Positions 964-51,186 of a stretch of DNA of 64,000 bases are shown piece after piece (positions within the stretch are counted from its first letter, which is position 1; every line of letters begins with the position of its first letter). The translations under genes were made by a program, and so were the position numbers. Below the pieces are notes generated by a model that worked only from the letters and a program-made list of their open reading frames with translations, searched no databases and was not told the origin of the DNA. This stretch comes from Tubulanus polymorphus (Eukaryota; Animalia; Nemertea): assembly GCF_964204645.1 (NCBI RefSeq), contig NC_134033.1:3992231-4056230 (forward strand), given 5' to 3'.

Positions 964-3900
964 CTACTTCTTTTGTTGACGTTTATATCTCGTTCTAATT
1001 GATTTCATATCGATCGTCAGTATTGTATAAAGAAGCGGATTCAGAGACGAGTTGATCGGTAAAAATAGAACGGCCAGCCAAGCGGCCACCTGGTTCGGTA
1101 TCTCGACCGAAAATACGGCGCAAAACTGGACGATTATTATCGGTAGCCAGCAAAATAGATTACAAAGATTGATTACTAAACTCCTTCGAGCTAAAACCAG
1201 TTCGGTAGGATCGGCTCTACCCGAGCCCGACCTACTTCCAGATACGAGTCTATACATCTGAGCGTACGTCGTCATTATCGTAGCCAATATAGCCGCATTA
1301 AACGAGGCAAAAATAGCGAATGAATAGTGCCAGCCATTGACGTCGATCGTCAGTAAATTCATAGGCAAACAAACTCCGGTTGTACCGTAAAAATTGTCTC
1401 CGAAGTAAGACGACGATGACAGCGGTAGAATAGAAACTGTGCTTATAACGAGCCAACAAATGCTGCAAATACCGATAACGTATTTCGGAGTTATAATCGG
1501 ACTTCTAGAAAACGGGTTGACGATATTTGAATATCTCTGACGCGTTAGAATTAGGAGAAAAGTCAGGGAACCTTCGCACGAAACGGTGACAATAACCCCG
1601 GCGAGACGGCATAATGAGCTATCCGTCCAGGTTTCAGAATTCAGATAATAAACGCCTTTGAACGCGTGGTCAGCTCCCGCGATCAAAAACAAATAGACCG
1701 ACATCAGAAAATCACAACCGGCAATATTTATGATGAAGATATCTGAAGATGTGTTACGTGTTCCGGAGGATTCCATCCGCAAAGCTTGAACGCGAAATAA
1801 AATAACGATACTGTTAGCGAGAAAACTGAAAGATGCGATCATCCAGATGATGGCTCTCAGTACAGTGTTACCCATCAGGTCAGAACAGGTGGAAAATTGA
1901 TCAGCTTCGGGAAGACATTGGTCAACATTCGGTGCCATGCAGCAAAATTTGTAAGCATCCGAAGCGAGGTATTTCAATGATGTAAGATCGCCAAGAACGT
2001 TTCCTTTTACAAATATCACTTCGGCATTTTTGACAAGATCTAGAATTTCAAGTCCAACCAATCCAGAAAAAGCAAATGTCGAAATTTAATGGATTCTGTT
2101 ACTGCTGATATTTAACGACTGTAATGCGGATAAACTTTTGAATACATTTTCACCGAGAACCGATATAGAAAGTCCGTGAAGATCGAGAACAGTAAGTGAC
2201 GTCAGACCTCGAAAACTACCGTCTTCTAAATGTTGCAGCGGATTTCCGATAATAAATAGTTGTTTTAAACCGATCAAACCTGCGAATGTATTAGCAGATA
2301 ATGATGTTATGCGGTTGTGAGTTAGGTCTAATGTGTATAGATTGTTTAGATTAGAAAACGCGTTTGGAACGATGTAAGACAAATTATTGCCCGAAATATC
2401 GAGAAAACGAAGATAACTGAAAGAGTTGAACGTCGAATCGTTAAATACGACTCGGTTATTCGACAAAATCAAAACCCGAGTTGATTCTATAAAACGACCA
2501 GTAATATCTGATAAAAGAGCATTTTCACAATCGATGAAATGACCCCGGCAATTACAACACTCAGGACACGTGACCTTACAGAATGACTCGTCATCCGAGT
2601 TATGTTTACAATTTACGACACCATCGCAAACTTCAGATTGCGGAATACATCGATTTTCCTGGCCACATTTAAACATTCCCGGACACGACCAAGTCTCGCA
2701 GTTTCGTTCATCCTCTGAATTAGGACAATCGGATCGACCGTCACAAACGTGTCTGATCGGTATACAGTAAGATGCCGGACATTTTACAGTACCAGCCGCG
2801 CATTCGAAGTCATTACACGCGAGTATATGTTCAAGATTTCTACATACCGGGAAACCAATCGGCGTCCTTTCTAAAATACACCTTTCGTGTCGGGAATAAC
2901 AGCGAGGAGAATTGAACGAACATCTTTGTTCATCCGATTCCTTACACAGATCTGTGAAACGAGTCGTACAGTGATTGTCATTATTACAGTAAACCTCGGG
3001 ATTCACTGTCATATTAGTGACCAATTCGTCTTCTTCGAGACTTCCGCTACAATCCACGACACCATCCCGATACAACTGAGAACTAATACATTCACCGTCC
3101 GCGCACGAGAACCCCTGACAAAGTTCGCCAGTGCATCCGATCTCATCGGAACCGTCTTTACAGTTGGTTAGTCCGTCACATCGTTTATAACTATCGATAC
3201 ATTTGTGATTGGAACAGCGATATTGCGTAGATAAACACGGTGGATGATAGCACGAGTTCTCATCCGAGCCATCGACGCAATTTCTCATAAAGTCACAGAA
3301 ACCGCTAATCGATATAACCTGTCCATCGTTACAGCGGAACTGACTATGTAAATTGATATCCGTACAATCGAGTTCATCTTCACCGCGTTGACAGTCGTTT
3401 CTGGTATCACATACGCGATGGTCGCTGATACATCTTTGATCGTTACATTCAAACTGCCACGATTTACAACCGCTTACAGAAGCTGACTCTTCACCAGTTA
3501 CATTATAGGTACACATCACGGAATGCACTTTATCTTTTGTCTTATCGAAAGGTTTCAATAACCATTTAACCGATTGAATATAAGTAATTTCATTTCTGGT
3601 CACCAGTGGTTTGATAACTTTAAACCCGTCGCGGTCCATCGTCAGAATAGCGCCGTATTGATGTCGATATTGAAATTCGTTGATCAAATTTTTCAAGTCG
3701 CTTTCTGTATTTGAGGTGATTCTTACTATTTCGGCGCGGATGCTGTGACACATTTCTCTAGCACTCCGAATATTTAAACCTCCATTGTTTTTCCAGTCGG
3801 TTAATATTTGATAACATTGTCCGGAAATAGTTACCCAACCTCTTGGACAGGTTGAATTCATTAAAGTAACATCGGGAATAATTTGATCTGTGGTTTTATT

Positions 3901-6900
3901 TAAGTCTGTATTTGTTGAATTGTTCGCGTCGTTTATCGTTGAATTATGTTTGTTTTTGATGTCGATTCTCTCAGATTCACAAATGAATGTCGTGTGCGTC
4001 TCCTCGATTTGACACGGGAATCGAACCCAGTTCGCTGATCCTCGTGGATTATTCAGTATCATCGCCGTACACGGCATGTTGACGTCATTTATCGGTTGTT
4101 TTCTTAGCGGAGATATCAATCCTCGAATAACTTCTGGTATCGTTTCATTAATAACAGGTTTATACCACTCTGCGTAGCTCAATGGTTTGCCGTCAGTCCA
4201 CGTGTAATAACCATCATTCTATTTCGTGAAGAGAAGAAAATATATCACTTCTTCAAAAACCATCTTATTCTAATTCATATTTGTATACATTAGTCTTACC
4301 TTCCATTTTAATCCAATCATCATTATGAGCGCTTTTAATGTGTAGGCCATTCGGAGAAGTTCTGTAGCCAATGATCTTTTGATGGAAATCATTTCCTGTT
4401 CTGAGTTGATACTGAGTAGATGTCCCGCGTACATCTGTCTACAGTATATTTCAGCGTTCTCCCAATTCAGACGTTCATCTCTGATGAATTTGATGCAGGA
4501 AATTCCGGAATCCAGAAATCCTTGTTTACAGTAGAAATCATCGAAATGTTTAATCGGTAACGACTCGTGTAAAGTGTATTGTATTTGAAATGTGGAGATT
4601 CTATTATTAACTTCAAAACGCAGATTATTATCTGTTAAACTATATAATATAAGTCCACGAACCGCGTTATTTTCACATAGTTTCGTTTCACGTTGAGTTT
4701 TAATAGTTTTGAAATATTTCCCATTGAGGAAGGGTTTATAATATATTAGTTGTATCAAAATGATTGGATCATTCGCAAACCTGCTGTTTGTTTCACATGA
4801 AGCTGATCCAATAAATTTGACAATAAATCTGTAATATTGAAATATATTTTGTTCTATAGGGTTTTCAAATTTATAGGAAATAGTTTTTGATGTACTTCCT
4901 GCCGAACCCGGGTAGTTCGGTGACTGCACGAGTCCACATTTATCTTTAGTAGTAACTGGAAGAAATGAACTGTCAAATCCAAAACTATCCGCTTTTTTCA
5001 CTCCTAGACATTTACGACGTAGTTTAACTATTAGTGGATACTGCCAGAATCCAAACTCACCTGTGAAATCTACAGTGTTTAATACGAGACTGTTATGAAG
5101 AAACTGATTACTCAAACTCAAAAACTGATCACATCGCCATGACATCTTGAGAAAACATTTATCAGTTTGATATTCGTGTTCTGATAATATGTGAATATTT
5201 TTCAAGCGAAGGCGTCGATTTTCAGGTGTAATCACGAGACAGTGTGACGTCATATTGATCTGACGTTCTTCTTCCTGTAGAACATAACCATCACAATCAG
5301 TAGGAGCAAATTGAAGATATGACCTGAAAGGATCACCAACAGTTAACTGATTGTTATAGTAATAAGCGTATGCTACTACAGTAACCGGTCCACCTGATGT
5401 AATCAGGCTGACGACAGATCGACCGTAGTATGAACCAGGACAATACGGACCATAGCGTCTAGCTGTGAAATTACTACCATCAAACATATAAAAACCAGCT
5501 CGATCACAGTTTTCTGATAGCACTGATAGTTTCAACTGTTCTTCGTAGATGTTCACTTTCCAGTTTAGTTGTAATGTAGTTACACGATACAATGTATTCT
5601 TTGATCTCGGGAACAAGTGAACAGCTATTATTGATGTCACGCCTGCATCATTCTGAAATATCAGGAAATTGATTACAGCATTAAACGTTTACTATCAATT
5701 TTCACGTTTACAATCCTCCCTCCATAATAAAATGTTTGTCCCTGTTTCCTCTCTGGTCAATATCACCTAGTTTTTAAGTGCATTCTTGAAAATAGTTTTT
5801 AGCATAAAACCGAAAATTTGAGGTTTTGAATAAATTTTAGTAGTTTTAAAATCTGTTTTGATGCTGTGATTGTGGGACTTATATTTCATTCGTCTCTCGC
5901 GATTTATTACGTAGTTTTTTCACGTTGAACAATACAACAATTTCAAATTCCCTATTACAATGATTCTATTACACGAACCCAATTTACAAATCATTATAAT
6001 AAACTTACCCGTGTCCTTGGCTTGTTGACGTAGACGTCTGATATTGTCATTGATTTCACTTCAAATTCTATTTTCAAATTCGATCTTAAAAAATCCGATG
6101 TCGTTAAAACGCACAGAATCACGAGAAATCCGTCTGATTTTACACTCAGAGATTTAAGATGGTTAAAACTGAGTAAAATATCAGTTCTCACAATACGTAA
6201 CCCTTCCTGTTTATATACACCAACGACACCTGGTGACGAGACGAGATCACGTGTCCAGTTGAAGACGACGTACTGCAGAACATCGACTGTGATAGACCAG
6301 CAGTATAAGTGTTTAGACTGAGTGACTATATGTGGTATTCCATCAATTGTAGTGAGCAGTCCTGATTTATCATAGACTTGAATTAACGGGTTAGAGATGT
6401 TCCAATCTGATATTTTGTAAACTTGCACGAGTAACTGCGACTTAACTCTACTTGACAAAAAATCAATACGTGCTTTATTAGTTTTAGTATAAAACGATGA
6501 TAGCGGATGTCCGGTTTGTTCTCGTATAAGAGCTATAGGTTCACTGGTGCTGTTCCATCCGTCGTAAATTTTAGGACGAGTTTTCATTGGATCCTCACCT
6601 GGTTTAAACCTGAAATCTATCTGTAAAAACGTTAAATTCATTGCAAACCCGTCTGGCATCCCGATCCATTCTAACAACAATTTACATCGCCGGGTAGAAA
6701 TCATGAATTCATAACCTGTTTGAGTTGGTAATTCTTTTACTGCACTTTTGCGACATGTATGTACGATTTTCAAGCGACTCTGTTCTTCAAAACGATATAT
6801 GATATAAACCCGACTACCTCGCGCTCCATCGACGTTACTCCTAAACAACAACGAGATCAAACCGTTACTGCGGATATCAAGTCGTTTTCTTCCGGTAGCG

Positions 6901-7229
6901 CAGAGTTTGTTGCCGGACTCACCGACGAGAAGGTAGTTTTCGTTACAGAATATCGACGGCTCGATGTCGTAGTAAACTTGAACGAGAAAACTTCCCGGTA
7001 AAGAGCTGTTGACGAACCAACGACATTCAACGCCGCGCACTAACGACGGATAGTTCGGTGAAACGATGTAACCAGACGTAGAATCGACGGAGTATTGAGT
7101 GTTGTTACAAGATGAACTGACTGTAACAGACGCGGCTTCCTCGACAGAGTTTGCGCGATCAGCCCGCGTAAATATACAGTCTCCGCAAGCGATCAGTAAA
7201 ACTACGAACAACGCTTTCATTCGCTGCAT
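964..7229 (-). pseudogene. GRL101-like CUB/C-type lectin/LDLa/LRR GPCR, copy 1; in-frame nonsense codon at 2086-2088 (pseudogene or secreted ectodomain)
   Basis: Exons 7229-6009, 5652-4300 and 4218-964, with phase-0 introns (CGG|gtaagt..tttcag|AAT; AAG|gtaaga..aaatag|AAT). The codon that is TAT (Tyr) in the other copies is TAA here; the frame continues intact to the 7TM end (ORF 964..2061). Confidence 0.88.
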
Positions 7230-11234: not shown

Positions 11235-14200
11235 CTACTTCTTTTGTTGACGTTTATATCTCGTTCTAATTGATTTCATATCGATCGTCAGTATTGTATA
11301 AAGAAGCGGATTCAGAGACGAGTTGATCGGCAAAAATAGAACGGCCAGCCAAGCGGCCACCTGGTTCGGTATCTCGACCGAAAATACGGCGCAAAACTGA
11401 ACGATTATTATCGGTAGCCAGCAAAATAGATTACAAAGATTGATTACTAAACTCCTTCGCGCTAAAACCAGTTCGGTAGGATCGGCTCTACCCGAGCCCG
11501 ACCTACTTCCAGATACGAGTCTATACATCTGAGCGTACGTCGTCATTATCGTAGCCAATTTGGCCGCATTAAACAAGGCAAAAATAGCGAATGAATAGTG
11601 CCAGCCATCGACGTCGATCGTCAGTAAATTCATAGGCAAACAAACTCCGGTTGTACCATAAAAATTGTCTCCGAAGTAAGACGACGATGACAGCGGTAGA
11701 ATAGAAACTGTGATTATAACGAGCCAACACGTGCAGCAAATACCGATAACGTGTTTCGGAGTTATAATCGGACTTCTAGAAAACGGGTTGACGATATTTG
11801 AATATCTCTGACGCGTTAGAATTAAGAGAAAAGTTAAGGAACCTTCGCACGAAACGGTGACAATAACCCCGGCGAGACGACATAATGAGCTATCCGTCCA
11901 GGTTTCAGAATTCAGATAATATACGCCTTTGAACACGTGGTCAGCTCCCGCGATCAAAAACAAATAGACCGACATCAGAAAATCACAACCGGCAATATTT
12001 ATGATGAGGATATCTGAAGATGTGTTACGTGTTCCGGAGGATTCCATCCGCAAAGCTTGAACGCGAAATAAAATAACGATACTGTTAGCGAGAAAACTGA
12101 AAGATGCGATCATCCAGATGATGGATCTCAGTACAGCGTTACCCATCAGGTCAGAACAGGTGGAAAATTGATCAGCTTCGGGAAGACATCGGTCAACATT
12201 CGGTGCCATGCAGCAAAATTTGTAAGCATCCGAAGCGAGGTATTTCAATGATGTAAGATCGCCCAGAACGTTTCTTTCTACGGATATTACTTCGGAATTG
12301 TTGACGAGATCTAGAATTTCAAGTCCAACCAATCCGTAAAAAACATAGCTGGAAATATAATGTATTCTGTTACTGCTGATATTTAACGACTGTAATGCGG
12401 ATAAACCTTTAAATACATTTTCACCGAGAACCGATATAGAAAGTCCGTGAAGATCGAGAACAGTAAGTGACGTCAGACCTCGGAAACAACCGTCTTCTAA
12501 ATGTTGCAGCGGATTCCCGATAAGAAATAGTTCTTTTAAACCGATCAAACCTGCGAATGTATTAGCAGATAATGATGTTATGTGGTTGTGAGTAAGGTCT
12601 AATGTGTATAGATTGTTTAGATTAGAAAACGCGTTTGGAACGATGTTAGACAAATTATTTCCCGAAATATCGAGAAAACGAAGATAAATGAAAGAGTTGA
12701 ACGTCGACTCGTTAAATACGACTCGATTATTAGACAAAATCAAAACCCGAGTTGATTCTATAAAACGATCAGTGATATCTGATAAAAGAGCATTTTCACA
12801 ATCGATGAAATGACCCCGGCAATTACAACACTCAGGACACGTGACCTTACAGAATGACTCGTCATCCGAGTTATGTTTACAATTTACGACTCCGTCGCAA
12901 ACTTCAGATTGCGGAATACATCGATTTTCCTGGCCACATTTAAACATTCCCGGACACGACCAAGTCTCGCAGTTTTGTTCATCTTCTGAATTAGGACAAT
13001 CGGATCGACCGTCACAAACGTGTCTGATCGGTATACAGTAAGATGCCGGACATTTTACAGTACCAGCCGCGCATTCGAAGTCATTACACGCGAGTATATG
13101 TTCAAGATTTCTACATACCGGGAAACCAATCGGCATCCTTTCTAAAATACACCTTTCGTGTCGGGAATAACAGCGAGGAGAATTGAACGAACATCTTTGT
13201 TCATCCGATTCCTTACACAGATCTGTGAAACGAGTCGTACAGTGATTGTCATTATTACAGTAAACCTCGGGATTCATTGTCATATTAGTGACCAATTCGT
13301 CTTCTTCGAGACTTCCGCTACAATCCACGACACCATCCCGATACAACTGAGAACTAATACATTCACCGTCCGCGCACGAGAACACCTGACAAAGTTTGGC
13401 AGTGCATCCGATCTCATCGGAACCGTCTTTACAGTTGGCTAGTCCGTCACATCGTTTATAACTATCGATGCATTGGTGATTGGAACAGCGATATTGCGTA
13501 GATAGACACGGTGGATGATAACACGAGTTCTCATCCGAGCCATCGACGCAATCTCTCATAAAGTCACAGAAACTGCTAATCGATATAACTTGTCCATCGT
13601 TACAGCGGAACTGACTGTGTAAATTGATATCCGTACAATCGAGTTCATCTTCACCGTGCTGACAGTCGTTTCTGGTATCGCATACGCGATGGTCGCTGAT
13701 ACATCTTTGATCGTTACATTCAAACTGCCACGATTTACAACCGCTTATAGAAGCTAACTCTTCACCAGTTACATTATAGGTGCATAACACGGAATGTACT
13801 TTATCTTTTGTATCATCGAAAGGTTTCAATAACCATTTAACCGATTGAATATAAGTAAATTCATTAATGGTCACCATTGGTTTGATAACTTTAAACCCGT
13901 CTCGGTCCATCGTCAGAATAGCGCCATATTGATGTCTATATTGAAATTCGTTGATCAAATTTTTCAAGTCACTTTCTGTATTTGAGGTGATTCTTACTAT
14001 TTCGGCGCGGATGCTGTGACACATTTCTCTAGCACTCCGAATATTTAAACCTCGATTGTTTTTCCAGTCGGTTAGTATTTGATAACATTGTCCGTAAATA
14101 GTTACCCAACCTCGTGGACAGGTTGAATTAGTTAAAGGTACATCGGGAATCATTTGATCTATGGTTTTATTTAAGTCTGTATTTGTTGAATTGTTCGCAT

Positions 14201-17200
14201 CGTTTATCGTTGAATTGTGTTCATTTTTGATGTCGATTCTCTCAGATTCACAAATGAATGTCGTGTGCGTCTCCTCGATTTGACACGGGAATCGAACCCA
14301 GTTCGCCGATCCTCGTGGATTATTCAGTATCATCGCCGTACACGGCATATTGACGTCATTTATCGGTTGTTTTCTTAGCGGAGATATCAATCCTCGAATA
14401 ACTTCTGGTATCGTTTCATTAATAACAGGTTTATACCACTCTGTGTAGCTCAATGGTTTACCGCCAGTCCACGTGTAATAACCATCATCCTGTTTCGTGA
14501 AGAAAATTAAACATATCGTAATTTTTAAAAAACCTTTATATTCTAATTCATAATTGTATACATTAGTCTTACCTGCCATTTCAATCCAATCATCATTATG
14601 AGCGCTTTTAATGTGTACACCAATCGGAGAAGTTCTGTAGCGAATAATCTTTTGATGGAAATCATTTCCTGTTCTGAGTTGATACTGAGTAGATGTCCCG
14701 CGTACTTCTGTCTACAGTATATTTCAGCGTTCTCCCAATTCAGACGTTCATCTCTGATGAATTTGATGCAAGAAATTCCGGAATCCAGAAATCCTTGTTT
14801 ACAGTAGAAATCATCGAAATGTTTAATCGGTAACGACTCGTGTAACGTGTATTGTATTTGAAATATCGGAATGAAATTGTTTACTTCAAAACGCAAAGTA
14901 TTATCTATTAAACTATAAAATATAAGTCCACGAACCGCGTTATTTTCACATATTTTAGTTTCATGTCGAGTGTGAAAGCGTTCGTAAATTATTGATTGTT
15001 TCAAAATGATCGGATCATTCTCACCTACGCTGTTTGTTTCACATGAAACGGATCCAATAGATTTGACAATAAATCTGAAATATTGAAATATATTTTGTTG
15101 TATCGGGTTTTCAAATTTATATGAAATAGATTTTGATGTACGTACTGCCCAACCCGGGTAGTTCGGTGACTGCACGAGTCCACATTTATCTTTAGTAGTA
15201 ACTGGAAGACGGGATCCAAGATATCCAAAACTATCGGCTTTTTTCACTCCTAGACATTTACGACGTAGTTTAACTATTAGTTGTCGCTGCCAGAATACAA
15301 ACCCATATGTGAAATCTACAGTGTTTAATACGAGACTGTTATTAAGAAACTGATTACTCAAACTCAGAAACTGATCACATCGCCATGACATCTTGAGAAA
15401 ACATCGGTCAATTTGATATTCGTGTTCTGATAATATGTGAATATTTTTCGAGCGAAGGCGTCGATTTTCAGGTGTAATCACGAGACAGTGTGACGTCATA
15501 TTGATCTGACGTTCTTCATCCTGTAGAACATAACCGTCACAATCAGTAGGAGCAAATTTAAGAGATGAGCTACCGAATCTTAACTGATTGTTATAGTAAT
15601 AAGCGTATGCTACTACAGTAACCGGTCCACCTGTTGTAATCAGGCTGACGACAGATCGACCGGAGAATGAATCAGGACAATACGGACCATAGCGTCTAGC
15701 TGTGAAATTACTACCATCAAATATATAAAAACCAGCTCGATCACAGTTTTCTGATAGCACTGTTAGTTTCAACTGTTCTTCATAGATGTTCACTTTCCAG
15801 TTTAGTTGTAATGTCGTTACACGATACAATGTATTCTTTGTTCTCGGGAACAATCGATTATCTGATATTGAGTTTGTGAGTGAATGCTGGAATATAAGAG
15901 AATTGATTACAACATTGAACGTTTACAATACGACAATTTCAAACCAATCACAACCTGAAAATATCGATAATAGTTCTCCTTGTAATCCAAACTAAATCTA
16001 AATTCTTCCACTAATCATCATAATTACTCTGCGTAAACAACAAGTGCGTCCGAATATATTGTAATTTGGGTCACACATAACATTGTTATTCCAATTTTCT
16101 CGGTAAAGTTTCGCTGGTCAAAATCATAGATTATTACAATGATTCTATTACACGAACCTAATTTACAAATCACTGTAATAAACTTACCGATATCTGTGGC
16201 TTGTTGACGTAGACGTCTGATATTGTCATCGATTTCGCTTCAAATTCTATTTTCAAATTCGATCTTAAAAAATCCGATGTCGTTAAAACGCACAGAATCA
16301 CGACAAATCCGTCTGATTTTACCCTCAGGGATTCAAGATGGTTAAAACTGAGTAAAATATCAGTTCTCACAATACGTAACCCTTCCTGTTTATATACACC
16401 AACGACACCTGGTGACGAGACGAGATCACGTGTCCAGTTGAAGACGACGTACTGCAGAACATCGACTGTGATAGACCAGCAGTATAAGTGTTTAGACTGA
16501 GTTACTATATGTGGTATTCCATCAATTGTAGTGAGCAGTCCTGATTTATTATAGACTTGAATTAACGGGTTAGAGATGTTCCAATCTGATATTTTGTAAA
16601 CTTGCACAAGTAACTTTGACTTAAACCAAGATCTACTTGAAATGAATTCAATACGTGCTTTATTAGTTTTAGTATAAAACGATGAAGGTGGATGTCCGGT
16701 TTGTTCTCGTGTAAGAGCTATAGGTTCACTGGTGCTGTTCCATCCGTCGTAAATTTGAGGACGAGGTTTCATCGGATCCTCACCTGGTCTTAATCTGAAA
16801 TCTATCTGTAAAAACGTTAAATTCATTGCGAACCCGTCTGGCATCCCGATCCATTCTAACAACAATTTACATCGCCGGGTAGAAATCATGAATTTATAAC
16901 CTGTTTGAGTTGGTAATTCTTTTACTGTATGTTTGTGACATGTATGTACGATTTTCAAGCGACTCTGTTCCTCAAAACGATATATGATATAAACCCGACT
17001 ACCTCGCGCTCCATCGACGTTACTCCTAAACAACAACGAAATCAAACCGTTACTGCGGATATCTAATTGTTTTCTTCCGGTAGCGCAGAGTTTGTTGTCG
17101 GACTCGCCGACGAGAAGGTAGTTTTCGTTACAGAATATCGACGGCTCGATTTCGTAGTAAACTTGAACGAGAAAACTTCCCGGTAAAGAGCTGTTGACGA

Positions 17201-17414
17201 ACCAACGACATTCGACACCGCGCACTAACGACGGATAGTTCGGTGAAACGATGTAACCAGACGTAGAATCGACGGAGTATTGAGTGTTGTTACAAGATGA
17301 ACTGACTGTAACAGACGCGGCTTCCTCGACAGAGTTTGCGCGATCAGCCCGCGTAAATATACAGTCTCCGCAAGCGATCAGTAAAACTACGAACAACGCT
17401 TTCATTCGCTGCAT
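11235..17414 (-). CDS. GRL101/RXFP-like GPCR with CUB, C-type lectin, LDLa and LRR ectodomain, copy 2 (~1931 aa)
   Basis: Exons 17414-16188, 15886-14573 and 14489-11235, all in frame. Signal peptide MKALFVVLLIACGDC; CUB motif SGYIVSPNYP; CTL motifs LNWENAEIYC and WTGGKPLSYTEW; LDLa CDGRSDCPNSEDE; LRR LxxLDLxxN; hinge AYKFCC; TM7 FLPINSSLNPLLYT. Confidence 0.92.
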
Positions 17415-36900: not shown

Positions 36901-37958
36901 TATTTCATTTATCGCGTTACGATCGCAGAATCGCTTCGTTTCCGAACGCCATTATGTCCGTTAATTCACACGAATCTAAATTCGGAGTAGTGAATCCAAT
37001 TTTCTGCCATGTAAAACGTAGTGTCCAAAACACGATCTTACGAAAACGCCACACCAAATCGGATAATTCAATTAATTTAAATATGGAAAGAAACAACTTC
37101 TTTCCGCACTGGAAGCTCTATAATTCATTTCAACTGAATCTGACGATATGAAGATTATATATTTCTCGAATAAGACAAACAAACAGCTATTAAATCCAGA
37201 CGGGAATGGTTTTTATACACAGATCGAGTTATCCGCAATATTTCAACTTAACCCGCGGTAGCGGCCCGTATTTCATGTAATTATAACGGTTACGGAATGT
37301 AACGTTCATCTTACACTTTTACTTCACCCCTGTTCACTCACCAAATATACACGATCGCTTGGCAGCGAGAGGTGCAGGATACACCACTGTTCTCCACCAA
37401 TGTTGTGGAGTTGCCTTCGGTTCTCCAACAATGTTGTGGGGTTGAATTTCTCAACCAATTGTTGTGGGGGCCACGTTGCGTTCTCCCCTTGTGTTGTCGT
37501 TGTTGGTTCCGATTAATCCGATAAGTGATATCCCTCTGACTCCGGAATAATAACAACTCTTCTCGTGGGTCTACGTTCTTTCTTTATTTTCCCGCACAAT
37601 TCTTATTCCTTCCTACAGCTCGTATTTTTAGGCTTCTCCGCCACTCTCGCATCTCTCTCCCCCTTACTGTGCTGACCCTCTCTTTTAATCTTATTTCATG
37701 TTACTCGTGACGTATACTTCTACATATGTTATACGTCACGAGTTTATTATACTTGTTTACTTCCTAGCCATACCAGAGCTCAAGGCTGCCGCTATAACCA
37801 GCAACCCTACGCAGATACTCACGTCACTTTCACCTATCTTCTATTCAGTGTCTTGTGTGCGACGTAAGCATCTACGTAGTTTGTTTACTAACTTCAGCCA
37901 CTGCCCTGAACTCTGGCTTCCCTCCCTCTATGCAAACTACTAATTTATCACCCCAATA
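33913..37958 (-). mobile_element. Non-autonomous LTR retroelement (~4.0 kb)
   Basis: 558-bp direct repeats at 33913-34470 and 37401-37958, with about 6 mismatches. Minus-strand termini TATTG...CAACA. PBS-like TGGTGGAGAA at 37399-37390 (complementary to a tRNA-Ala-type 3' end). Polypurine tract GGGGAGGAGGATAG at 34484-34471 abuts the 3' LTR. No internal gag/pol ORF; no TSD. Confidence 0.82.
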
Positions 37959-38850
37959 GTATTCCATCAATTGTAGTGAGCAGTCCTGATTTATTATATA
38001 CTTGAATTAACGGGTTAGAGATGTTCCAATCTGATATTTTGTAAACTTGCCAGAGTAGCTTCGACTTCAAACTACTTTCAATTTCAATACGTGCTTTGTT
38101 AGTTTTAGTATAAAACGATGAAGGCGGATGTCCGGTTTGTTCTCGTATAAGAGCTATAGGTTCACTGGTGCTGTTCCATCCGTCGGAAATTTGAGGACGA
38201 GTTTTCATCGGATCCACGCCTGGTCTTAATCTGAAATCTATCTGTATAAACGTTAAATTCATTGCAAACCCGTCTGGCATCCCGATCCATTCTAACAACA
38301 ATTTACATCGGAGGGTAGAAATCATGAATTCATAACCTGTTTGAGTTGGTAATTCTTTTACTGCATGCTTGTGACATGTATATACAATTTTCAAGCGACT
38401 CTGTTCTTCAAACCGATATATGATGTTAACCCGACTACCTCGCGCTCCATCGACGTTACTCCTAAACAACAACGAAATCAAACCGTTACTGCGGATATCA
38501 AGTTGTTTTCTTCCGTTAGCGCAGAGTTTGTTGCCGGACTCACCGACTAGAAGGTAGTTTTCGTTACAGAATATCGACGGCTCGATGTCGTAGTAAACTT
38601 GAACGAGAAAACTTCCCGGTAAAGAGCTGTTGACGAACCAACGACATTCAACACCGCGCACTAACGACGGATAGTTCGGTGAAACGATGTAACCAGACGT
38701 AGAATCGACGGAGTATTGAGTGTTGTTACAAGACGAACTGACTGTAACAGACGCGGCTTCCTCGACAGAGTTTGCGCGATCAGCCCGCGTAAATATACAG
38801 TCTCCGCAAGCGATCAGTAAAACTACGAACAACGCTTTCATTCGCTGCAT
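37959..38850 (-). pseudogene. GPCR copy 3: 5' part of exon 1 only (signal peptide + CUB), truncated by an LTR
   Basis: Near-identical to exon 1 of the other copies up to ...LLTTIDGI, then runs into the LTR at 37958. The rest of the gene is absent on the other side of the element. Confidence 0.88.
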
Positions 38851-41807
38851 ATTGAACACAATTCACGCTTCAAAACAAACACATTTCTAACTATTTCTAA
38901 GTTTGCGCGACATTTCTCATAAGAGTGGCTGCAAAGTAATGACGAATTCGCAAATGTTTAAAGTTGACGAATTAATTGAGTCCAATTATTTTGTATAAAA
39001 ACTCTCCCATCAAACTGGCGCCAGTCTCGTATTTGTAAAACTTTCATCTGTTCTCGGTTTCGCTGTAATTACCGCGGTTTCTAAATTTAGACGTGCTTCA
39101 ATATATCGTGTCTATAATCGTGTGCGATTATTTCGCTAAAAATATTTACTGTCGCTCCCGAACTGCGTTTTGATAACCGAACCAGTTTTTGATAATGTTC
39201 GATGATATTTTCTATATTAACTTCAGAATATTCTGCGTCTCTGTAAAAGACTTCGTCAATATCTGTTTTGACAATTCACACTCTACAGTCAATATAATAA
39301 CTGAGTTGTAGCTAGATGAAGAGTATGGATATCTGATTGTGGCGGGTAAGGTCTTGTTCTGTGCAGACTTTTTGAGGAAACAACTCAATCCAAGTAAGAC
39401 GACGATGACAGCGGTAGAATAGAAACCGTGCTTATAACGAACCAACAAATACAGCAAATACCGATAACGTATTTCGGCGTTATAATCGGACTTCTAGAAA
39501 ACGGGTTGACGATATTTGAATATCTCTGACGCGTTAGAATTAAGAGAAAACTTAACAGTGGTAGAATAGAAACTGTGCTTATAACGAACCAACAAATACA
39601 GCAAATACCGATAACGTATTTCGGAGTTATAATTGGACTTGTAGAAAACGGGTTGACGATATTTGAATATCTCTAACGCGTTAGAATTAAGAGAAAAGTT
39701 AAAGTAGCCTATATTTATTCATCTTGACTTGAATTCATAAATACAAATAACAGTATTTCCTGCTTGGCTGCTGCTGTTGCTGCTGTTGCTGGTGCTAAGA
39801 CAGTTCTAGCAAGTTACAGAGAATGGGTATTTGATTTATTGAATGGATTGCATATTTCCTATGATGATATCATCTTAATTCATTTTATTTGATGAAATCA
39901 ATTGCAAATAGTTCTAAGATTCGTGCTTGATTTCAGTGACAATTCGAGTTATAGACAATGGAAATGTAATTAACAGATTGTATTGCAAAGTGATTTTTCT
40001 GCTAATTCAATTTTGAAAGGATTTAATTTACTGTATAGAAATATCATTTTAACGAGGACTGTTAGAGAATATCTGATATTAAATCTACTTCATATATTAG
40101 TTAGGTTTCTGAAGTTAAGATACTAACAGGGCCAGTCTGGTATTATCTAGCCAGTGGTGGTCGTGTCCATTGAACCTCATTATGACAAACTCCGTTCATA
40201 TTGTGGCCTGTTCTTGTCCTCGATCTTTGAAATCATGTAATACGTGTTCGATTTGAATTGAACCAATTCTGATGATTCATTCGTAACATACGTTGAATTC
40301 ACTATACACGCGCATATATGTCCAGTCCTTATGTGAGGTTACGTAAGTGAAAAGGGAGATCTATAAGTTTTTTTCCACTAATTTAGAGACTAATTTGCGA
40401 AGTTGCCGAGGAATGCTTTCGACAATTCACATCTCGTGTAAAATTAGTCTACTTGACTCCCTATCTCTGGGATCTCACTCGGGCATCCAACCTAAACTTA
40501 AACATTGATTCTTCCAGTCGGAACTGAAATATGAAATTGTTGTTTTTCAGATTAGCCATTCCTCACTCAGGACCTGATTGCTGCCAATACCAGACTCCAG
40601 GCTTTTCTAAAAAATCCATGATGCTTCACACATAAATTGGTGGTGAGTAGATTTGTGGGTTTTTGATAATGGATATAACAGATTACAATGTGCATGTATC
40701 GAGTCAAATTTAAAATTATTATTGAGATCAATACTGTTTTTCAGATATGCTCTACTTCCTCGGGACCTGATTGCTGTCAGTGCGTGCTGGACTTAACCAA
40801 CAAGACGGGACATATTTTAGTGCTGTAACTTGGGTGTCAAATCTCCCAATGAAACGATAACTGATCGTTATAATCCATGAAGTTCCACTCATGAATTGGT
40901 GAGAAGACATTTTAATTCCAATTCTAAATGTCAAACTTAAGTTAGGTCGGATTCAAGCTGATTCAAGTCAAATTAAACACCTTAGTTGCTTTTTCAGAGA
41001 AGATCTTCCTGAGCAGGATCTGATTGTTGAATAAACCGACAAATACACTTTCCAGATTCCAGAACTTCCTCACTTCATCAGGACCTGATTGCACCAAGTG
41101 TGTGCCGACAAAAACAACCTGATCTGATAGAGGACTCATGTGAGCTGAATGATAAATCTCTTCGAGGAAAAGATAATCGAAAACTGCTCACATAAATCGG
41201 TGAGTAGAAATTATAAATTATTTCTCTCTAGGAAACTGAGGTTAGGTTTAATCTTAGGGTATTTCGTGTTCACTCACGCGTGACGAGGGTTGATATACAA
41301 ACTACCATCGTCACTAATTGAATCATCCAAGAGAACTTCAAATATTTGTTTTTTTAAATGATGCCCTTTCGCCATTTTCTCGGGACATGTTTGCTACCGT
41401 TTCGATTAAACCAACCCAAATCGCGACCGGAAGACTCAAACTCTTCCGGAATAAACTAAGGAGCTCAACACGTCACATGGATCATGGCGAGTAGACATTT
41501 TGTGGAGTCGAAATATCTAATCACCATGATTTAATTTCAATACACTGCAGAGCTGTATGATATTGTATAAAAACTTATGTTTCAAAAAATGAGCGAAAAT
41601 TTATCGCAACAATGAGGACCTCGACGGACCGCCACGAAATGACAACTAGAAACTGGAAACTTCTTTATTGTGAATGACACAATAAAAAAATTAAACTAAT
41701 TCGGTCATGCGATTTCAAACGAACTCAACTAAGTTTTAGGATTTCGAGTTTCAACCCCAATTTATAGATAGGCAAACATTATACAGGGACTCTTGTCAAA
41801 CTGTTGT

Positions 41808-44800
41808 TTATTTACTGGATGTCGTCAATCCTAGTCGTCGTTTATTGCGTTCACGAATAGATTTCATATCGATAGTAAGTATTGTATAAAGAAGCGGATT
41901 CAGAGACGAGTTGATCGGTAAAAATAGAACGGCCAGCCAAGCGGCCATCTGGTTCGGTATCTCGACCGAAAATACGGCGCAAAACTGAACGATTATTATC
42001 GGTAGCCAGCAAAATAAATTACAAAGATTGATTACTAAACTCCTTCGAGCTAAAACCAGTTCGGTAGGATCGGCTCTACCCGAGCCCGACCTACTTCCAG
42101 ATACGAGTCTATACATCTGAGCGTACGTCGTCATTATCGTAGCCAATATGGCCGCATTAAACAAGGCAAAAATAGCGAATGAATAGTGCCAGCCATCGAC
42201 GTCGATCGTCAGTAAATTCATAGGCAAACAAACTCCGGTTGTACCGTAAAAATTGTCTCCGAAGTAAGACGACGATGACAGCGGTAGAATAGAAACTGTG
42301 CTTATAACGAGCCAACAAAAGCAGCAAATACCGATAACGTATTTCGGAGTTATAATCGGACTTCTAGAAAATGGGTTGACGATATTTGAATATCTCTGAC
42401 GCGTTAGAATTAAGAGAAAAGTCAAGGAACCTTCGCACGAAACGGTGACAATAACCCCGGCGAGACGACATAATGAGCTATCCGTCCAGGTTTCAGAATT
42501 CAGATAATAAACGCCTTTGAACACGTGGTCAGCTCCTGCGATCAGAAACAAATAGACCGACATCAGAATATCACAACCGGCAATATTTATGATGAGGATA
42601 TCTGAAGATGTGTTACGTGTTCCTGAGGATTCCATCCGCAAAGCTTGAACGCGAAATACAATAACGATACTGTTAGCGAAAAAACTGAAAGATGCGATCA
42701 TCCAGATGATGGCTCTCAGTACAGCGTTACCCATCAGGTCAGAGCAGGTCGAAAATTGATCAGCTTCGGGAAGACATCGGTCAACATTCGGTGCCATGCA
42801 GCAAAATTTGAAAGCATCCGAAGCGAGGTATTTCAATGACGTAAGATCGCCAAGGACGTTTCTTTGTACGGATATTATTTCAAAATTGTTGACAAGGTCT
42901 AGAATTTCAAGTCGAGCCAATCCAGAAAATGCATAGCTAGAAATATAATGGATTCTGTTACTGCTGATATTTAACGACTGTAATGCGGATAAACCTTTAA
43001 ATACATTTTCACCGAGAACCGATATAGAAAGTCCGTGAAGATCGAGAACAGTAAGTGACGTCAGACCTCGAAAACTACCGTCTTCTAAATGTTGGAGTGG
43101 ATTTCCGATAAGAAATAGTTCTTTTAAAACGACCAAACCTACGAATGTATTAGCAGATAATGATGTAATGCGGTTGTGTGTAAGGTCTAATGCGTATAGA
43201 TTATTTAGATTAGAAAACGCGTTTGGAACGATGTAAGACAAATTATTGCACGAAATATCGAGAAAACGAAGATAAATGAAAGAGTTGAACGTCGACTCGT
43301 TAAATACGACTCGGTTATTCGACAGAATCAAAACCCGAGTTGATTCTATAAAACGACCAGTAATATCTGATAAAAGGAGATTTTCACAATCGATGAAATG
43401 ACCCCGGCAATTACAACGTTCAGGACACGTGACCTTACAGTATGACTCGTCATCTGAGTTATGTTTACAATTTACGACTCCGTCGCAAACTTCAGATTGC
43501 GGAATACATCGGTTTTCCTGGCCACATTTAAACATTCCCGGACACGACCAAGTCTCGCAGTTTCGTTCATCTTCAGAATTAGGACAATCGGATCGACCGT
43601 CACAAACGTGTCTGATCGGTATACAGTAAGATGCCGGACATTTTACAGTACCAGCCGCGCATTCGAAGTCATTACACGCGAGTATATGTTCAAGATTTCT
43701 ACATACCGGGAAACCAATCGGCATCCTTTCTAAAATACACCTTTCGTGTCGGGAATAACAGCGAGGAGAATTGAACGAACATCTTTGTTCATCCGATTCC
43801 TTACACAGATCTGTGAAACGAGTCGAACATTGATTGTCATTATTACAGTAAACCTCGGGATTCACTGTCATATTAGTGACCAATTCGTCTTCTTCGAGAC
43901 TTCCGCTACAATCCACGGCACCATCCCGATACATCTGAGAACTAATACATTCACCGTCCGCGCACGAGAACCCCTGACAAAGTTCGCCAGTGCATCCGAT
44001 TTCATCGGAGCCGTCTTTACAGTTGGCTAGTCCGTCACATCGTTTATAACTATCGATGCATTGGTGATTGGAACAGCGATATCGCGTAGATAAACACGGT
44101 GGATGATAGCACGAGTTCTCATCCGAGCCATCGACGCAATCTCTCATAAAGTCACAGAAACCGCTTATCGATATAACCTGTCCATCGTTACAGCGGAACT
44201 GACTGTGTAAATTGATATCCGTACAATCGAGTTCATCTTCACCGTGTTGACAGTCGTGTCTGGTATCACATACGCGATGGTCGCTGATACATCTTTGATC
44301 GTTACATTCAAACTGCCACGATTTACAACCGCTTATAGAAGCTGACTCTTCACCAGTTACATTATAGGTACATAACACGGAATGCGCTTTATCTTTTGTA
44401 TTATCGAAAGGTTTCAATAACCATTTAAGCGATTGAATATAAGTAATTTCATTTTTGGTCACCAGTGGTTTGATAACTTTAAATGCGTCGCGGTCCATTG
44501 TCAGTATAGCGCCATATTGATGGCGATATTGAAATTTGTTGATCAAATTTTTCATATCACTTTCTATATTTAAGTTGATTCTTACTATTTCGGCGCGGAT
44601 GCTGTGACACATTTCTCTGGCACTCCGAATATTCAAACCTCGATTGTTTTTCCAGTCGGTTAATATTTGATAACATTGTCCAGAATTAGTTACCCAACCT
44701 CTTGGACAGGTTGAATTAATTAAAGTAACATCGGGATTCATTTGATCTATGGTTTTATTTAGTTCTGTATTTGTTGAATTGTTCGCATCGTTTATCGTTG

Positions 44801-47800
44801 AATTGTGTTTGTTTTTGATGTCGATTCTCTCAGATTCACAAATGAATGTCGTGTGCGTCTCCTCGATTTGACACGGGAATCGAACCCAGTTCGCTGATCC
44901 TCGTGGATTATTCAGTATCATCGCCGTACACGGCATATTGACGTCATTTATCGGTTGTTTTCTTAGCGGAGATATCAATCCTCGAATAACTTCTGGTATC
45001 GTTTCATTAATAACAGGTTTATACCACTCTGCGTAGCTCAATGGTTTACCGTCAGTCCACGTGTAATAACCATCATTCTGTTTCGTGAAGAAAATGAAAT
45101 ATATTATAATCTTTAAAAATCATCCTATTCTAATTCATATTTGTATACATTATTCTTACCTTCCATTTCAATCCAATCATGATTATGAGTGCTTTTAATG
45201 AGTACGCCATTCGGAGAAGTTCTGCCGCGAATAATCTTTTGATGGAAATCATTTCCTGTTCTGAGTTGATACTGAGTAGATGTCCCTCGTACTTCTGTCT
45301 ACAGTATATTTCAGCGTTCTCCCAATTCAGACGTTCATCTCTGATGAATTTGATGCAGGAAATTTCGGAATCCAGAAATCCTTGTTTACAGTAGAAATCA
45401 TCGAAATGTTTAATCGGTAACGACTCTTGTAAAGTGTATTGTATTTGAAAGGTTGGGATATTATTCCTTACTTCAAAACGCAGAGTATTATCCGTTAAAG
45501 TATAAAAAATAAGTCCACGAACCGCGTTATTTTCACATATTAAAGTTTCGTGTTGGGTCCTAATAATTTTGAACAGTTTTCCATTTTGGAAGAGGGAGTA
45601 CTTTATCAGCTGTATAAAAATGATTGGATCATTCCCGCGTATGTTGTTTGTTTCACATGAAACTGATCCAATAAATTTGACAATAAATCTGTAATATTGA
45701 AATATATTTTGTTCTAAAGGGTTTTCAAATTTATATGAAATAGATTCTGATGTAAGTCCTGCCCGACCTGGATAGTTCGGTGACTGCACGAGTCCACATT
45801 TATCTTTAGTAGTAACTGGAAGACGGGAACCGGCAAATCCAAAACTATGCGCTTTTTTCACTCCTAGACATTCACGACGTAGTTTTAATATTAGTGGATA
45901 CTGCCAGAACCAAAACCCATCACCTGTGAAATCTACAGTGTTTAATACGAGACTGTTATTAAGAAACTGATTACTCAAACTCAGAAACTGATCACATAAT
46001 AATGTCATCTTGAGAAAACATCGGTCAATTTGATATTCGTGTTCTGATAATATGTGAATACTTTTCAAGCGAAGGCGTCGATTTTCAGGTGTAATCACGA
46101 GACATTGTGACGTCATATTGATCTGACGTTCTTCTTCCTGTAGAACATAACCATCACAATCAGTAGGAGCAAATCTAAGAATTGAGTTGCCGGTGTAACC
46201 AACTGTTAACTGATTGTTATAGTAATAAGCGTATGCTACTACAGTAACCGGTCCACCTGATGTAATCAAGCTGACGACAGATCGACCGTAGTATGAACCA
46301 GGACAATACGGACCATAGCGTCTAGCAGTGAAATTACTTCCATCAAATATATAAAAACCAGCTCGATCACAGTTTTCTGATAGCACTGTTAGTGTCAACT
46401 GTTCTTCATAGATGTTCACTTTCCAGTTTAGTTGTAATGTAGTTACACGATACAATGTATTCTTTGATCTCGGGAACAATCGATTAGCTGATATTGAGTT
46501 TCTGGATAAATGCTGAAATATAAGAGAATTGATTACAACATTGAACGTTTACAATACAACAATTTCAAACTCTGTACGACCTCGATATATTGATAATAGT
46601 TCAAAATGTTGCAATCAAATCTTAACTTAAATTCTTCCACAAATCATCATAATTACTCTGCGTAAACAACAAGTGCGTCCAACTATATTGAAATTTGGAT
46701 CACACATAACGTTGTTATTCCAAGTTTCTCGGCAATGTTTCCCTGGTCAAAATCGCCATCAAAATCATAGATAATTACCATAATTCTATTACATGAACAT
46801 AATTTACAAATCATTGTTATACACTTACCGATATCCTTGGTTTGTTGACGTAGACGTCTGATATTGTCATTGATTTCATTTCAAATTCTATTTTCAAATT
46901 CGATCTTAAAAAATCCGATGTCGTTAAAACGCACAGAATGACGAGAAATCCGTCTGATTTTACACTCAGAGATTTAAGATGGTTAAAACTGAGTAAAATA
47001 TCAGTTCTCACAATACGTAACCCTTCCCGTGTATATACACCAACGACACCTGGTGACGAGACGAGATCACGTGTCCAGCTGAAGACGACGTACTGCAGAA
47101 CATCGACTGTGATAGACCAGCAGTATAAGTGTTTAGTCTGAGTTACTATATGTGGTATTCCATCAATTGTAGTGAGCAGTCCTGATTTATTATAGACTTG
47201 AATTAACGGGTTAGAGATGTTCCAATCTGATAATTTGTAAACTTGCACGAGTAACTGCGACTTAAAAAGTGGGTTTCTATTTGAAATAATTTCAATACGT
47301 GCTTTATTAGTTTTAGTATAAAACGATGAAGGTGGATGTCCGGTTTGTTCTCGTATAAGAGCTATAGGTTCACTGGTGCTGTTCCATCCGTCGTTAATTT
47401 GAGGACGAGTTTTCATCGGATCCTCACCTGGATATAATCTGAAATCTATCTGTATAAACGTTAGATTCATTGCAAACCCGTCTGACATCCCGATCCATTC
47501 TAACAACAATTTACATCGGAGGGTAGAAATCATGAATTCATAACCTGTTTGAGTTGGTAATTCTTTCACTGCATGCTTGTGACATGTATGTAAGATTTTC
47601 AAGCGACTCTGTTCTTCAAAACGATATATGATATAAACCCGACTACCTCGCGCTCCATCGACGTTACTCCTAAACAACAACGAAATCAAATCGTTACTGC
47701 GGATATCTAGTTGTTTTCTTCCGGTAGCGCAGAGTTTGTTGTCGGACTCACCGACGAGAAGGTAGTTTTCGTTACAGAATATCGACGGCTCGATGTCGTA

Positions 47801-48058
47801 GTAAACTTGAACGAGAAAACTTCCCGGTAAAGAGCTGTTGACGAACCAACGACATTCAACACCGCGCACTAACGACGGATAGTTCGGTGAAACGATGTAA
47901 CCAGACGTAGAATCGACGGAGTATTGAGTGTTGTTACAAGATGAACTGACTGTAACAGACGCGGCTTCCTCGACAGAGTTTGCGCGATCAGCCCGCGTAA
48001 ATATACAGTCTCCGCAAGCGATCAGTAAAACTACGAACAACGCTTTCATTCGCTGCAT
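41808..48058 (-). CDS. GRL101/RXFP-like CUB-CTL-LDLa-LRR GPCR, copy 4 (~1950 aa)
   Basis: Exons 48058-46829, 46512-45160 and 45077-41808; canonical phase-0 GT-AG introns of 316 and 82 nt; same domains as copy 2; alternative C-tail RERNKRRLGLTTSSK. Confidence 0.92.
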
Positions 48059-49541: not shown

Positions 49542-50952
49542 TTGAGTTTGAATTTTTTTGAAAGGGATTGAACCAAAATATTCAGTTAACGAAACTGCGT
49601 CCTACATAAAACTTAAAGATGGAGCATCCATTCGGCACCTACCCGTAAAAGTGGTTGATATGGAAAAACTATTTCCGTCATTCTCGAGGATCGTACCGAA
49701 GCATTATCTATAGGCTAACTCTGCAAACTGTTAGTTGATAAACCCACGCATAGTAAGAAAAGAGACGTTTCGACAATTCTGTGAGCCATTAAAAACAAAT
49801 TTCAAATTGTTTATTTTCCAGAATAAGTGGATAGATGGAGAGTTAGTGTTCTTTTCTGATAACTGATTAAGCGTGATTAACGAAAGTACCTGTCAATCCA
49901 ACTGTATCGTGACCGGAATTAAACTAGGACAAATAGTCATAAACTATATACCTGTATAGCGAGCAACGCTCCAATATACTCGAATATAGTCAACTTTCGA
50001 AATTAAATCTGATAAAGGGGTTAATATGAATAAATTGTGAGAGAAATAAATCTACTATTCTGTTTAAATCATATATTGCGTGGTATATCCGTTGAGAGTC
50101 TGTCTCATCGGTAGCGATCATATTACCCAAGTGCATACCAGTTTTTGATACTTTGATAATATGACCTCGAAATAAAACATTTGATTTTCAAGGATTTAAT
50201 CATGCCAGGGAAGAGCAAGTAGATAAAATAGTGAATATATATAGTCTATTAAGCATTAAATTTGAAATCGTATTCTATTGAAAATTGATTGCATATTTCA
50301 ATCATGATATTCAATGCTTATGATATTTTGCATGAGGTATATTGCACTTTATTTTACGTGGCAATTTCGTTAACCCGAATCGGTCACCATAGGGTTCGGC
50401 GGAGGCTGAAAAATAATTTCATCCGGTGGCACATTTAGTAAAGTAGTATAGTATTTATTTTTCATTAGGTCGTTACATTATTACATTATTGATATCGCAT
50501 GATATACAGTGACAAAAATGTAACAAGAAAATGTGGGCTACACGAAGAGATCACAAAGATCTATCGGAGCCGTGCCGCCCTGAAAAAAAAATCAAACCAA
50601 TCATTCTTACACACACGCTCACACTACATCAGTGAATACAAATTAATAAGTCGTCATCTATGTAATCGTCAATTTCAATTGCACTAGACAGTAAAGGGCT
50701 CACCGAGCCCCTTAAATCCACACCTGAAGTAAATACTATTGCATTTAACAAACAATCTACAATGAATCTAATAGCTACGAAAATAACACTATTTCATATG
50801 AATTGTTCAGATAAAGTAGTGACAAAAAAACTGAATGGACCACGGGCCCAAAGGTCGTCGTTAATATCTGTCCTTTGTTCTTTTGATTCATTACTAGAGT
50901 TTGGTGTGCGACCATGAACATTAAAACGATTCGTTTAAAAGCTCCTTTATTG

Positions 50953-51184: not shown

Positions 51185-51186
51185 TT

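Follow-up and report, generated by a model that had tools for sequence, protein, structure and literature searches.

In GRL101 of Lymnaea stagnalis (LGR type C) and in RXFP1/2, LDLa repeats, leucine-rich repeats (LRRs) and a rhodopsin-type seven-transmembrane domain (7TM) follow one another in a single chain, and in Aplysia GRL101 a CUB domain lies upstream of the LDLa repeats. Tandem expansions of GRL101 (29–132 genes) have been described in ampullariid (apple) snails, whose tentacles and labial palps express many of these genes (PMC6573481), and tentacle-specific expression of GRL101 has been found in Charonia (PMC13403566). In Biomphalaria sudanica, the schistosome-resistance locus SudRes2, revealed by association in a genome-wide association study, contains a cluster of 12 genes for lectin-LDLa-LRR GRL101-like G-protein-coupled receptors, or GPCRs (PMC12297450). 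In the current research, we analyzed a 64,000-nucleotide stretch of the genome of the nemertean Tubulanus polymorphus (assembly GCF_964204645.1, contig NC_134033.1, positions 3,992,231 to 4,056,230; hereafter the window), which carries a tandem array of giant receptor genes of this type. According to an earlier note, made from the sequence of the window, these receptors possess hypervariable loops resembling the complementarity-determining regions (CDRs) of antibodies and subject to diversifying selection. Our analysis supports the existence of hypervariable patches. As for their origin, we consider it reasonably probable that they are weakly constrained loops, reshuffled as cassettes by gene conversion within a lineage-specific GRL101-like family that evolves by birth and death.

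Self-comparison of the window revealed four full gene units and two fragments, all on the minus strand (Table 1). The full units share 93.8–95.1% DNA identity; each consists of three exons with GT-AG introns, all of phase 0, and encodes a protein of about 1,940 amino acids. Similarity searches were run exon by exon, and domains split by an intron, such as the first lectin-like domain, were searched as halves. In exon 3, the Pfam matches to LDLa repeats, LRRs and 7TM all exceeded their thresholds. Ldl_recept_a gave 119 bits in six stretches; LRR_8 (82.9 bits in three stretches) and LRR_4 (37.9 bits) were found directly N-terminal of the 7TM, and 7tm_1 gave 88.1 bits with a cut-off of 30.5. Among named proteins, exon 3 was most similar to GRL101 or GRL101-like proteins of Hypsibius, Ischnura, Penaeus, Glandiceps and Aplysia, with about 30% of the residues identical across about 75% of the exon (E 1e-78 to 1e-125), and its closest match was XP_074658304.1 of T. 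polymorphus itself (72% identity). With LDLa repeats, LRRs and 7TM all recognized in its sequence, the predicted receptor is a GRL101-like leucine-rich-repeat GPCR of LGR type C. The NPxxY (NPLLY) and CWxP (CWLP) motifs of the 7TM are canonical. TM3, in contrast to GRL101 and RXFP1/2, ends with QRY in place of the E/DRY motif in all copies (approximately at 42400-42450 of the window in copy 4).

A further difference from GRL101 and RXFP1/2 is an additional N-terminal region of about 1,100 amino acids, in which about six modules evolve fast and lectin-like domains are present. This extension is predicted to comprise about six beta-rich modules (D1–D6), the first of them CUB-like, and one or two lectin-like modules. 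The earlier note had assigned the region to CUB domains, an assignment with weak support: D1 reached 17.5–18 bits with the Pfam CUB model, below the gathering score of 21.4, but D2–D6 gave no match to it even at E up to 10. Against a CUB profile of seven sequences, hhalign returned probabilities of 56% for D1, 35% for D6, 9% for D2 and below 1% for D3–D5, while language-model features pointed, at the level of a lead, to CUB clusters at 0.90. Compared with each other by hhalign, the six modules had no significant similarity. The half-domain at the end of exon 2 scored 18.4 bits with Lectin_C, under the cut-off of 22.6, being one half of the intron-split domain; the second lectin-like module had no Pfam match. 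The phmmer search of exon 2 among 1.84 billion representative proteins yielded 13 weak matches, every one in the half lectin domain, and no homologue of residues 1–360; a profile search of PDB sequences with D6 returned nothing at E up to 10. Because there were no homologues outside the family for the alignment, the AlphaFold2 models were poor, with a mean pLDDT (predicted local distance difference test) of 30.7 for exon 2 (28 paralogs aligned) and 51.9 for D6 alone (31 paralogs aligned). Comparison of the poor D6 model with the PDB (Foldseek) and by VIA-align produced generic beta-sandwich matches, the best with Z 5.8, and no CUB.

The layout of these receptors also occurs in a distant relative, at locus L051 (ENA ERZ24900295, ctg5357l, 6107-13207). 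Its upstream frame of 835 amino acids includes a genuine CUB domain (65.7 bits) at the module equivalent to D1, and ends in a half lectin domain. An intron interrupts the lectin domain just where it does in T. polymorphus, and LDLa-LRR-7TM follows (35% identity), whereas the N-terminal modules cannot be aligned beyond short motifs. Since L051 shares the layout, the latter predates T. polymorphus, and L051 would be of use in dating the architecture.

The variation was analyzed in 32 paralogs of a single subfamily, 24 of them full length. All of the loop peptides quoted in the earlier note are present, loop 1 in copies 1, 2, 3, 4 and 6 and the other four in copies 1, 2, 4 and 6. The clustering of radical differences into short patches was confirmed as well: with exons 1 and 2 divided into bins of 10 codons, the nonsynonymous counts reach a dispersion index of 7.4 (P = 1e-84). 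Likewise, D1, the LDLa repeats and the 7TM proved to be nearly invariant, with a proportion of nonsynonymous differences (pN) of mostly 0–0.03. However, about eleven patches were counted in exons 1 and 2 instead of about seven, and the variation, which had been assumed to stay within the CUB region, extends to the linker, the second lectin-like module, the last LRRs and the C-terminal tail.

The reported preservation of the reading frame is borne out by exon 2, which is in frame in all 32 copies. Despite at least 11 distinct indels it contains zero frameshifts, and therefore the variable stretches are maintained as coding sequence. The shortening of copy 2 after the ETNS... loop is due to a deletion found in no other of the 32 paralogs, although it removes 9 codons and not about 11 amino acids. 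The composition of the loops agrees with the first description only in part. In columns with at least four residues, Arg is enriched 1.9-fold, and Met, His, Thr, Asn and (slightly) Ser are enriched too, but aromatic residues (0.8–0.9-fold) and Gly (0.7-fold) are not; Cys does not occur in these columns.

Each patch is represented by a few discrete variants, which are common to subsets of the paralogs and are combined differently from patch to patch. The longest block (4630..4815) exists in about 6–8 discrete cassette forms, and its proportion of synonymous differences (pS) rises to 0.55. Within a pair of paralogs, stretches of hundreds of identical bases give way abruptly to divergent ones. 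Among 405 biallelic informative sites, the four-gamete test was failed by 34% of the pairs, and by 19% of those within 10 nt; the pairwise homoplasy index (PHI) was 0.270, compared with 0.3445 ± 0.0048 in permuted data (0 of 500 permutations as extreme), and the minimum number of recombination events (Rm) was 143 in 4 kb. Recombination between the paralogs is thus pervasive. The disrupted copies (pseudogenes) bear the same cassettes as the other paralogs. The proportion of differing sites (p-distance) in the introns (0.23 in intron 1 and 0.13 in intron 2) is above the background synonymous divergence of 0.03–0.1 and resembles the synonymous divergence of the patches. These observations may suggest that conversion, together with purifying selection, homogenizes the constrained stretches, and that the free loops, like the introns, hold an older divergence reshuffled by conversion. 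Mosaic cassettes, pseudogenes with the same cassettes and pervasive recombination are also features of the major histocompatibility complex (MHC), KIR, snail FREPs, sea-urchin Sp185/333 and the pseudogene-templated Ig V genes of the chicken, which are recognition families diversified by gene conversion. The likeness to these systems lies in the evolutionary pattern only; here the signalling module is a GPCR, and a ratio of nonsynonymous to synonymous change (omega) significantly above 1 was not found at the variable sites.

The incompatibility of sites within 10 nt and the extreme PHI invalidate any single tree, and for this reason tree-free counting was chosen over PAML M8, FEL or MEME. Omega was obtained by joining the different codons of each column in a minimum spanning tree, and these counts take no account of transition bias or multiple hits. 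The mean pairwise pS and pN were 0.070 and 0.041 in exon 1, 0.126 and 0.073 in exon 2, and 0.094 and 0.031 in exon 3. In every variable patch pS climbs alongside pN: loop 1 has a pN of 0.185 and a pS of 0.176, the TVG loop 0.189 and 0.171, and columns 300-315 of exon 2 have 0.171 and 0.555, respectively. The synonymous counts are also over-dispersed (index 2.35, P = 2.5e-11) and, bin by bin, correlate with the nonsynonymous ones (rho 0.71).

In exon 2, omega is 0.79 in the patches (1.06 nonsynonymous and 1.33 synonymous changes per site) and 0.50 outside them (0.30 and 0.60, respectively); the corresponding values for exon 1 are 0.71 and 0.61. The core is under stronger constraint, with an omega of 0.21 in the 7TM, 0.33 in the LDLa repeats and 0.31 in the LRRs. 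The five quoted loops, when pooled, have an omega of 1.09, with P(omega>1) = 0.37, and 1.13 synonymous changes per site; outside the patches this number ranges from 0.30 in exon 1 to 0.60 in exon 2. For the longest block, of 62 codons, omega is 0.62, with P(omega<1) = 0.0015. The values of the patches are alike in intact and disrupted copies. The excess of nonsynonymous change at variable sites that characterizes selected receptor repertoires was therefore not found. This speaks against the diversifying selection on CDR-like loops claimed before; a dN/dS of 1 or less with raised synonymous divergence, which the note itself had named as evidence to the contrary, is essentially what the counts reveal.

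In the explanation that we favour, a conserved LDLa-LRR-7TM signalling core would bear the long N-terminal extension, and the family would evolve by birth and death and by short-tract gene conversion or recombination between paralogs. The patches would represent loops and linkers of the outer modules that are weakly constrained, with a near-neutral omega of about 0.6–1.3, and would stand at the upper end of a gradient that passes through the scaffold (about 0.5) to the 7TM (0.2). They would hold a deeper synonymous divergence than their flanks, and from a limited set of cassettes conversion would produce the mosaic combinations. A rival reading, possible but in our opinion rather doubtful, is that true diversifying or balancing selection acts on ligand-contact loops and keeps the cassette types against homogenizing conversion, in an immune, allorecognition or chemosensory repertoire. 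The sharply local variation between homogenized flanks, the intermediate frequency of several cassettes and the strictly in-frame length variation are in line with it, as is the pS of the patches, which equals or exceeds the divergence of the introns and would fit old, maintained lineages. Omega reaches 3.0–4.4 in the PGxAGxT patch and 1.3–1.6 in two others, and a reading of the motifs by eye may place several of the patches at the positions of the would-be CUB loops L3, L5 and L9. However, no patch is significant once corrected, the pooled loops do not depart significantly from neutrality, and the longest block is significantly below 1; the loop composition is not CDR-like, pseudogenes and intact genes share the pattern, and the models of the ectodomain are poor.

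Several points nevertheless weigh against weakly constrained loops as the explanation. The omega of 3.0 in the 7–8 codons of PGxAGxT has P = 0.04 uncorrected, which fails the correction for 11 patches. A loop-average omega near 1 can mask a mixture of positively selected and conserved sites, so that selection on single sites may remain compatible with our values, and a raised pS near the patches is also expected from long-term balancing or diversifying selection against homogenization, as at the MHC. The analysis covers 32 of several hundred paralogs, the low pLDDT values limit what can be predicted from the structure models, and competence for coupling is assumed in spite of the QRY motif. 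A more far-reaching proposal, to which we assign a low probability, is a germline combinatorial system, in which several hundred GPCR genes and donor pseudogenes would exchange loop cassettes by short-tract conversion while selection keeps the alphabet diverse. If true, hundreds of ectodomain surfaces would be displayed on one constant core, perhaps with a single surface for each sensory or immune cell, and the system would be a GPCR-based analogue of immune receptors diversified by gene conversion. It is very unlikely that the array is merely decaying, or selfishly amplified, with the patches reflecting lost constraint in non-functional copies. Stops or frameshifts do occur in half of the full-length copies, including copy 1, and exon-1-only fragments are dispersed through the array; on the other hand, purifying selection on the 7TM, LDLa repeats and LRRs is strong, 12 copies are fully open over about 1,940 codons, exon 2 is free of frameshifts in 32 copies, most exon 3 frames are open, and the patch pattern is the same in intact copies. 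An artefact, by which misaligned indel-rich stretches would imitate hypervariability, seems scarcely credible: three patches contain indels, and misalignment would push both kinds of counts up and omega towards 1, but the longest and most variable block is nearly free of indels and displays the same pattern, and the cassettes recur unchanged in different paralogs.

The family is large. The T. polymorphus genome (268 Mb) was searched with parts of the receptor, and all scored matches had E <1e-150, the counts being lower bounds. The 7TM query gave at least 127 matches scored among 529 candidates, exon 1 at least 102 among 381, and exon 2 at least 94 among 381. The genes form arrays on C9 (the contig of the window; 2.27-5.09 Mb), C6 (about 17.9-22.1 Mb), C12, C8, C11 and others. 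When the C9 and C6 subfamilies are compared, the 7TM is about 82% identical, exon 1 about 65% and exon 2 about 60%; therefore, the outer ectodomain is fast-evolving at deeper levels too. Half of the full-length copies (12 of 24) are intact, and the other 12 are disrupted, 4 by a nonsense codon only and 8 by frameshifts or deletions. Genome-wide, the exon 3 frames are mostly open over about 1,080–1,106 codons.

The family has what is expected of a chemosensory repertoire, namely tandem copies in large number (at least 127), many of which are pseudogenes (12 of 24 sampled copies disrupted). It is probable that the outer modules bind a range of macromolecular ligands while the core transmits the signal, and the family would in that case serve as a germline recognition repertoire. 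By analogy with the tentacle-expressed expansions of snail GRL101, a chemosensory function is the most likely one, innate immune recognition being the alternative. The diversified recognition or chemosensory repertoire suggested by the earlier note fits the large tandem birth-and-death family with a fast outer ectodomain on a conserved core, but the part of the suggestion that concerns selected loops is not supported. With the ampullariid genes the family shares lineage-specific tandem bursts in a lophotrochozoan, which in the snails were read as environmental sensing (PMC6573481). It differs in belonging to another phylum, in its apparently larger size (at least 127 genes scored, up to about 500 candidates) and in its much longer ectodomain. 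The SudRes2 cluster likewise consists of GRL101-like GPCR paralogs that carry a lectin-type domain at the N-terminus, and it, too, has structural variants, shortened copies and a possible recognition role (PMC12297450), whereas it comprises 12 genes compared with hundreds here and is without CUB-like modules (PMC12297450).

The features of the window are listed in Table 1. Copy 1, the copy to which the coordinates of the earlier note refer, is one of the disrupted genes: with its in-frame TAA, the encoded protein ends in the last LRRs, ahead of the 7TM. Copy 1 could be a young pseudogene, or could code only for a secreted ectodomain without the 7TM.

Table 1. Gene units, domains and variable patches in the 64-kb window of T. 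polymorphus (positions counted from the first nucleotide of the window; columns are those of the exon alignments).
Feature	Position	Strand	Details
Copy 1, full unit	964-7229	(-)	exons 7229-6009, 5652-4300, 4218-964
Copy 1 exon 1	6009..7229	(-)	407 codons; ATG at 7229, GTAAGT donor after 6009, open frame
Copy 1 exon 1 content		(-)	signal peptide; CUB-like D1 6780-7115; D2 6408-6761; D3 6045-6407
Copy 1 exon 2	4300..5652	(-)	451 codons; CAG acceptor before 5652, GTAAGA donor after 4300, phase 0
Copy 1 exon 2 modules		(-)	D4 5299-5613; D5 5014-5301; D6 4561-4947
C-type-lectin-like domain, N-terminal half	4300-4542	(-)	end of copy 1 exon 2
Copy 1 exon 3	964..4218	(-)	rest of lectin-like domain, linker, second lectin-like module, LDLa-LRR-7TM
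Copy 1 exon 3 domains (Pfam)		(-)	six LDLa 2581-3474; LRRs 1885-2580; 7TM 1000-1869
Copy 1 in-frame TAA	2086..2088	(-)	TAT (Tyr) in copies 2, 4, 6
Patch at D2 start	6654..6779	(-)	exon 1 columns 150-195; omega 0.70
Patch inside D2	6564..6623	(-)	exon 1 columns 205-225; omega 0.87
Loop 1 patch	6435..6479	(-)	exon 1 columns 256-275; length-variable; omega 0.92-1.04
Patch at exon 1 end	6009..6095	(-)	columns 388-417; omega 0.51
Patch at exon 2 start, linker	5617..5652	(-)	columns 0-13; top pN 0.34; omega 1.32, not significant
TVGDPFRSYLQ patch	5311..5343	(-)	exon 2 columns 106-117; 3-codon indel; omega 1.02
Patch between two D5 cysteines	5131..5166	(-)	exon 2 columns 165-177; omega 0.87
FTGEFGFWQYP patch	5041..5067	(-)	exon 2 columns 198-208; omega 0.55-0.78
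D5-D6 linker patch	4963..4992	(-)	exon 2 columns 224-234; omega 0.57
PGSAGST (PGxAGxT) patch	4885..4908	(-)	exon 2 columns 252-260; omega ~3
Longest block, ETNSRFAND and next segment	4630..4815	(-)	exon 2 columns 283-345; omega 0.62
Copy 2, intact	11235..17414	(-)	exons 17414-16188, 15886-14573, 14489-11235
Copy 3, exon-1-only fragment	37948..38859	(-)	ends after ~300 codons; loop 1 variant EIESSLKSK
Copy 4, intact	41808..48058	(-)	exons 48058-46829, 46512-45160, 45077-41808
Copy 5, relic of the 3' end of a gene unit	50909..51187	(-)	279 bp; from self-comparison
Copy 6, intact	53684..59904	(-)	exons 59904-58672, 58381-57035, 56953-53684

Some additional observations concern the structure of the array. 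A relic of exon 3, about 156 bp long and derived from the section that codes for the 7TM (equivalent to 1403-1561), is located at 7742-7896 and at 39392-39699, about 500 bp upstream of the start codons of copies 1 and 3, and is tandem-duplicated at the second site. The same relic was found upstream in loci L034, L039, L045, L046 and L050, possibly as a trace of the site where the original tandem duplication unit was joined. Two tandem-repeat arrays lie between copies 2 and 3, one at 23082-23411 with a CT-rich 53-bp unit (about 6 copies) and the other at 23925-24357 with a 44-bp unit (about 10 copies). Just upstream of the copy 3 fragment, at 34001-38000, the GC skew is strongly negative (-0.33 and -0.27 in 2-kb bins). 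Copy 3 is one of five exon-1-only fragments with open frames and the same end point after about 300 codons, the others being located at C9:4074688, 3091117 and 3032548 and at C22:132427; they look like one shortened unit that was itself re-duplicated.

Elsewhere on C9, loci L031 (3.055 Mb, plus strand) and L033 (4.152 Mb, minus strand) differ at only 11 positions in about 4,000 compared bases while lying 1.1 Mb apart, and one of the two carries a nonsense codon. Their near-identity points either to conversion over a long range or to a large inverted segmental duplication that took place very recently. In L022 (C9:2852018-2853355) and in two other copies, intron 2 has a length of 81 nt, is of phase 0 and contains no stops, giving exon 2-3 open frames of 1,461–1,608 codons; retention of the intron would keep the frame. 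Contigs from four RNA runs, which are short and collapsed, span introns too and are without joints matching them; a run of 2015 had no match, and these runs speak neither for nor against expression.

The tandem expansion of GRL101 itself has already been published; the novelty lies in the phylum, in the apparent size of the family, in the long N-terminal extension with its many modules and in the mosaic cassettes documented here. Antibody-like diversifying selection should not be claimed any further without recombination-aware tests. The mosaic cassettes make the family a good system for studying how conversion both homogenizes and reshuffles a receptor family. The findings extend the GRL101 expansions of snails to a second phylum, with a far larger modular ectodomain. 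The chemosensory and immune receptors of nemerteans are essentially uncharted, and a family of giant GRL101-type receptors (at least 127 genes, up to about 500 candidates), arranged in megabase arrays, is a strong candidate for such a role.

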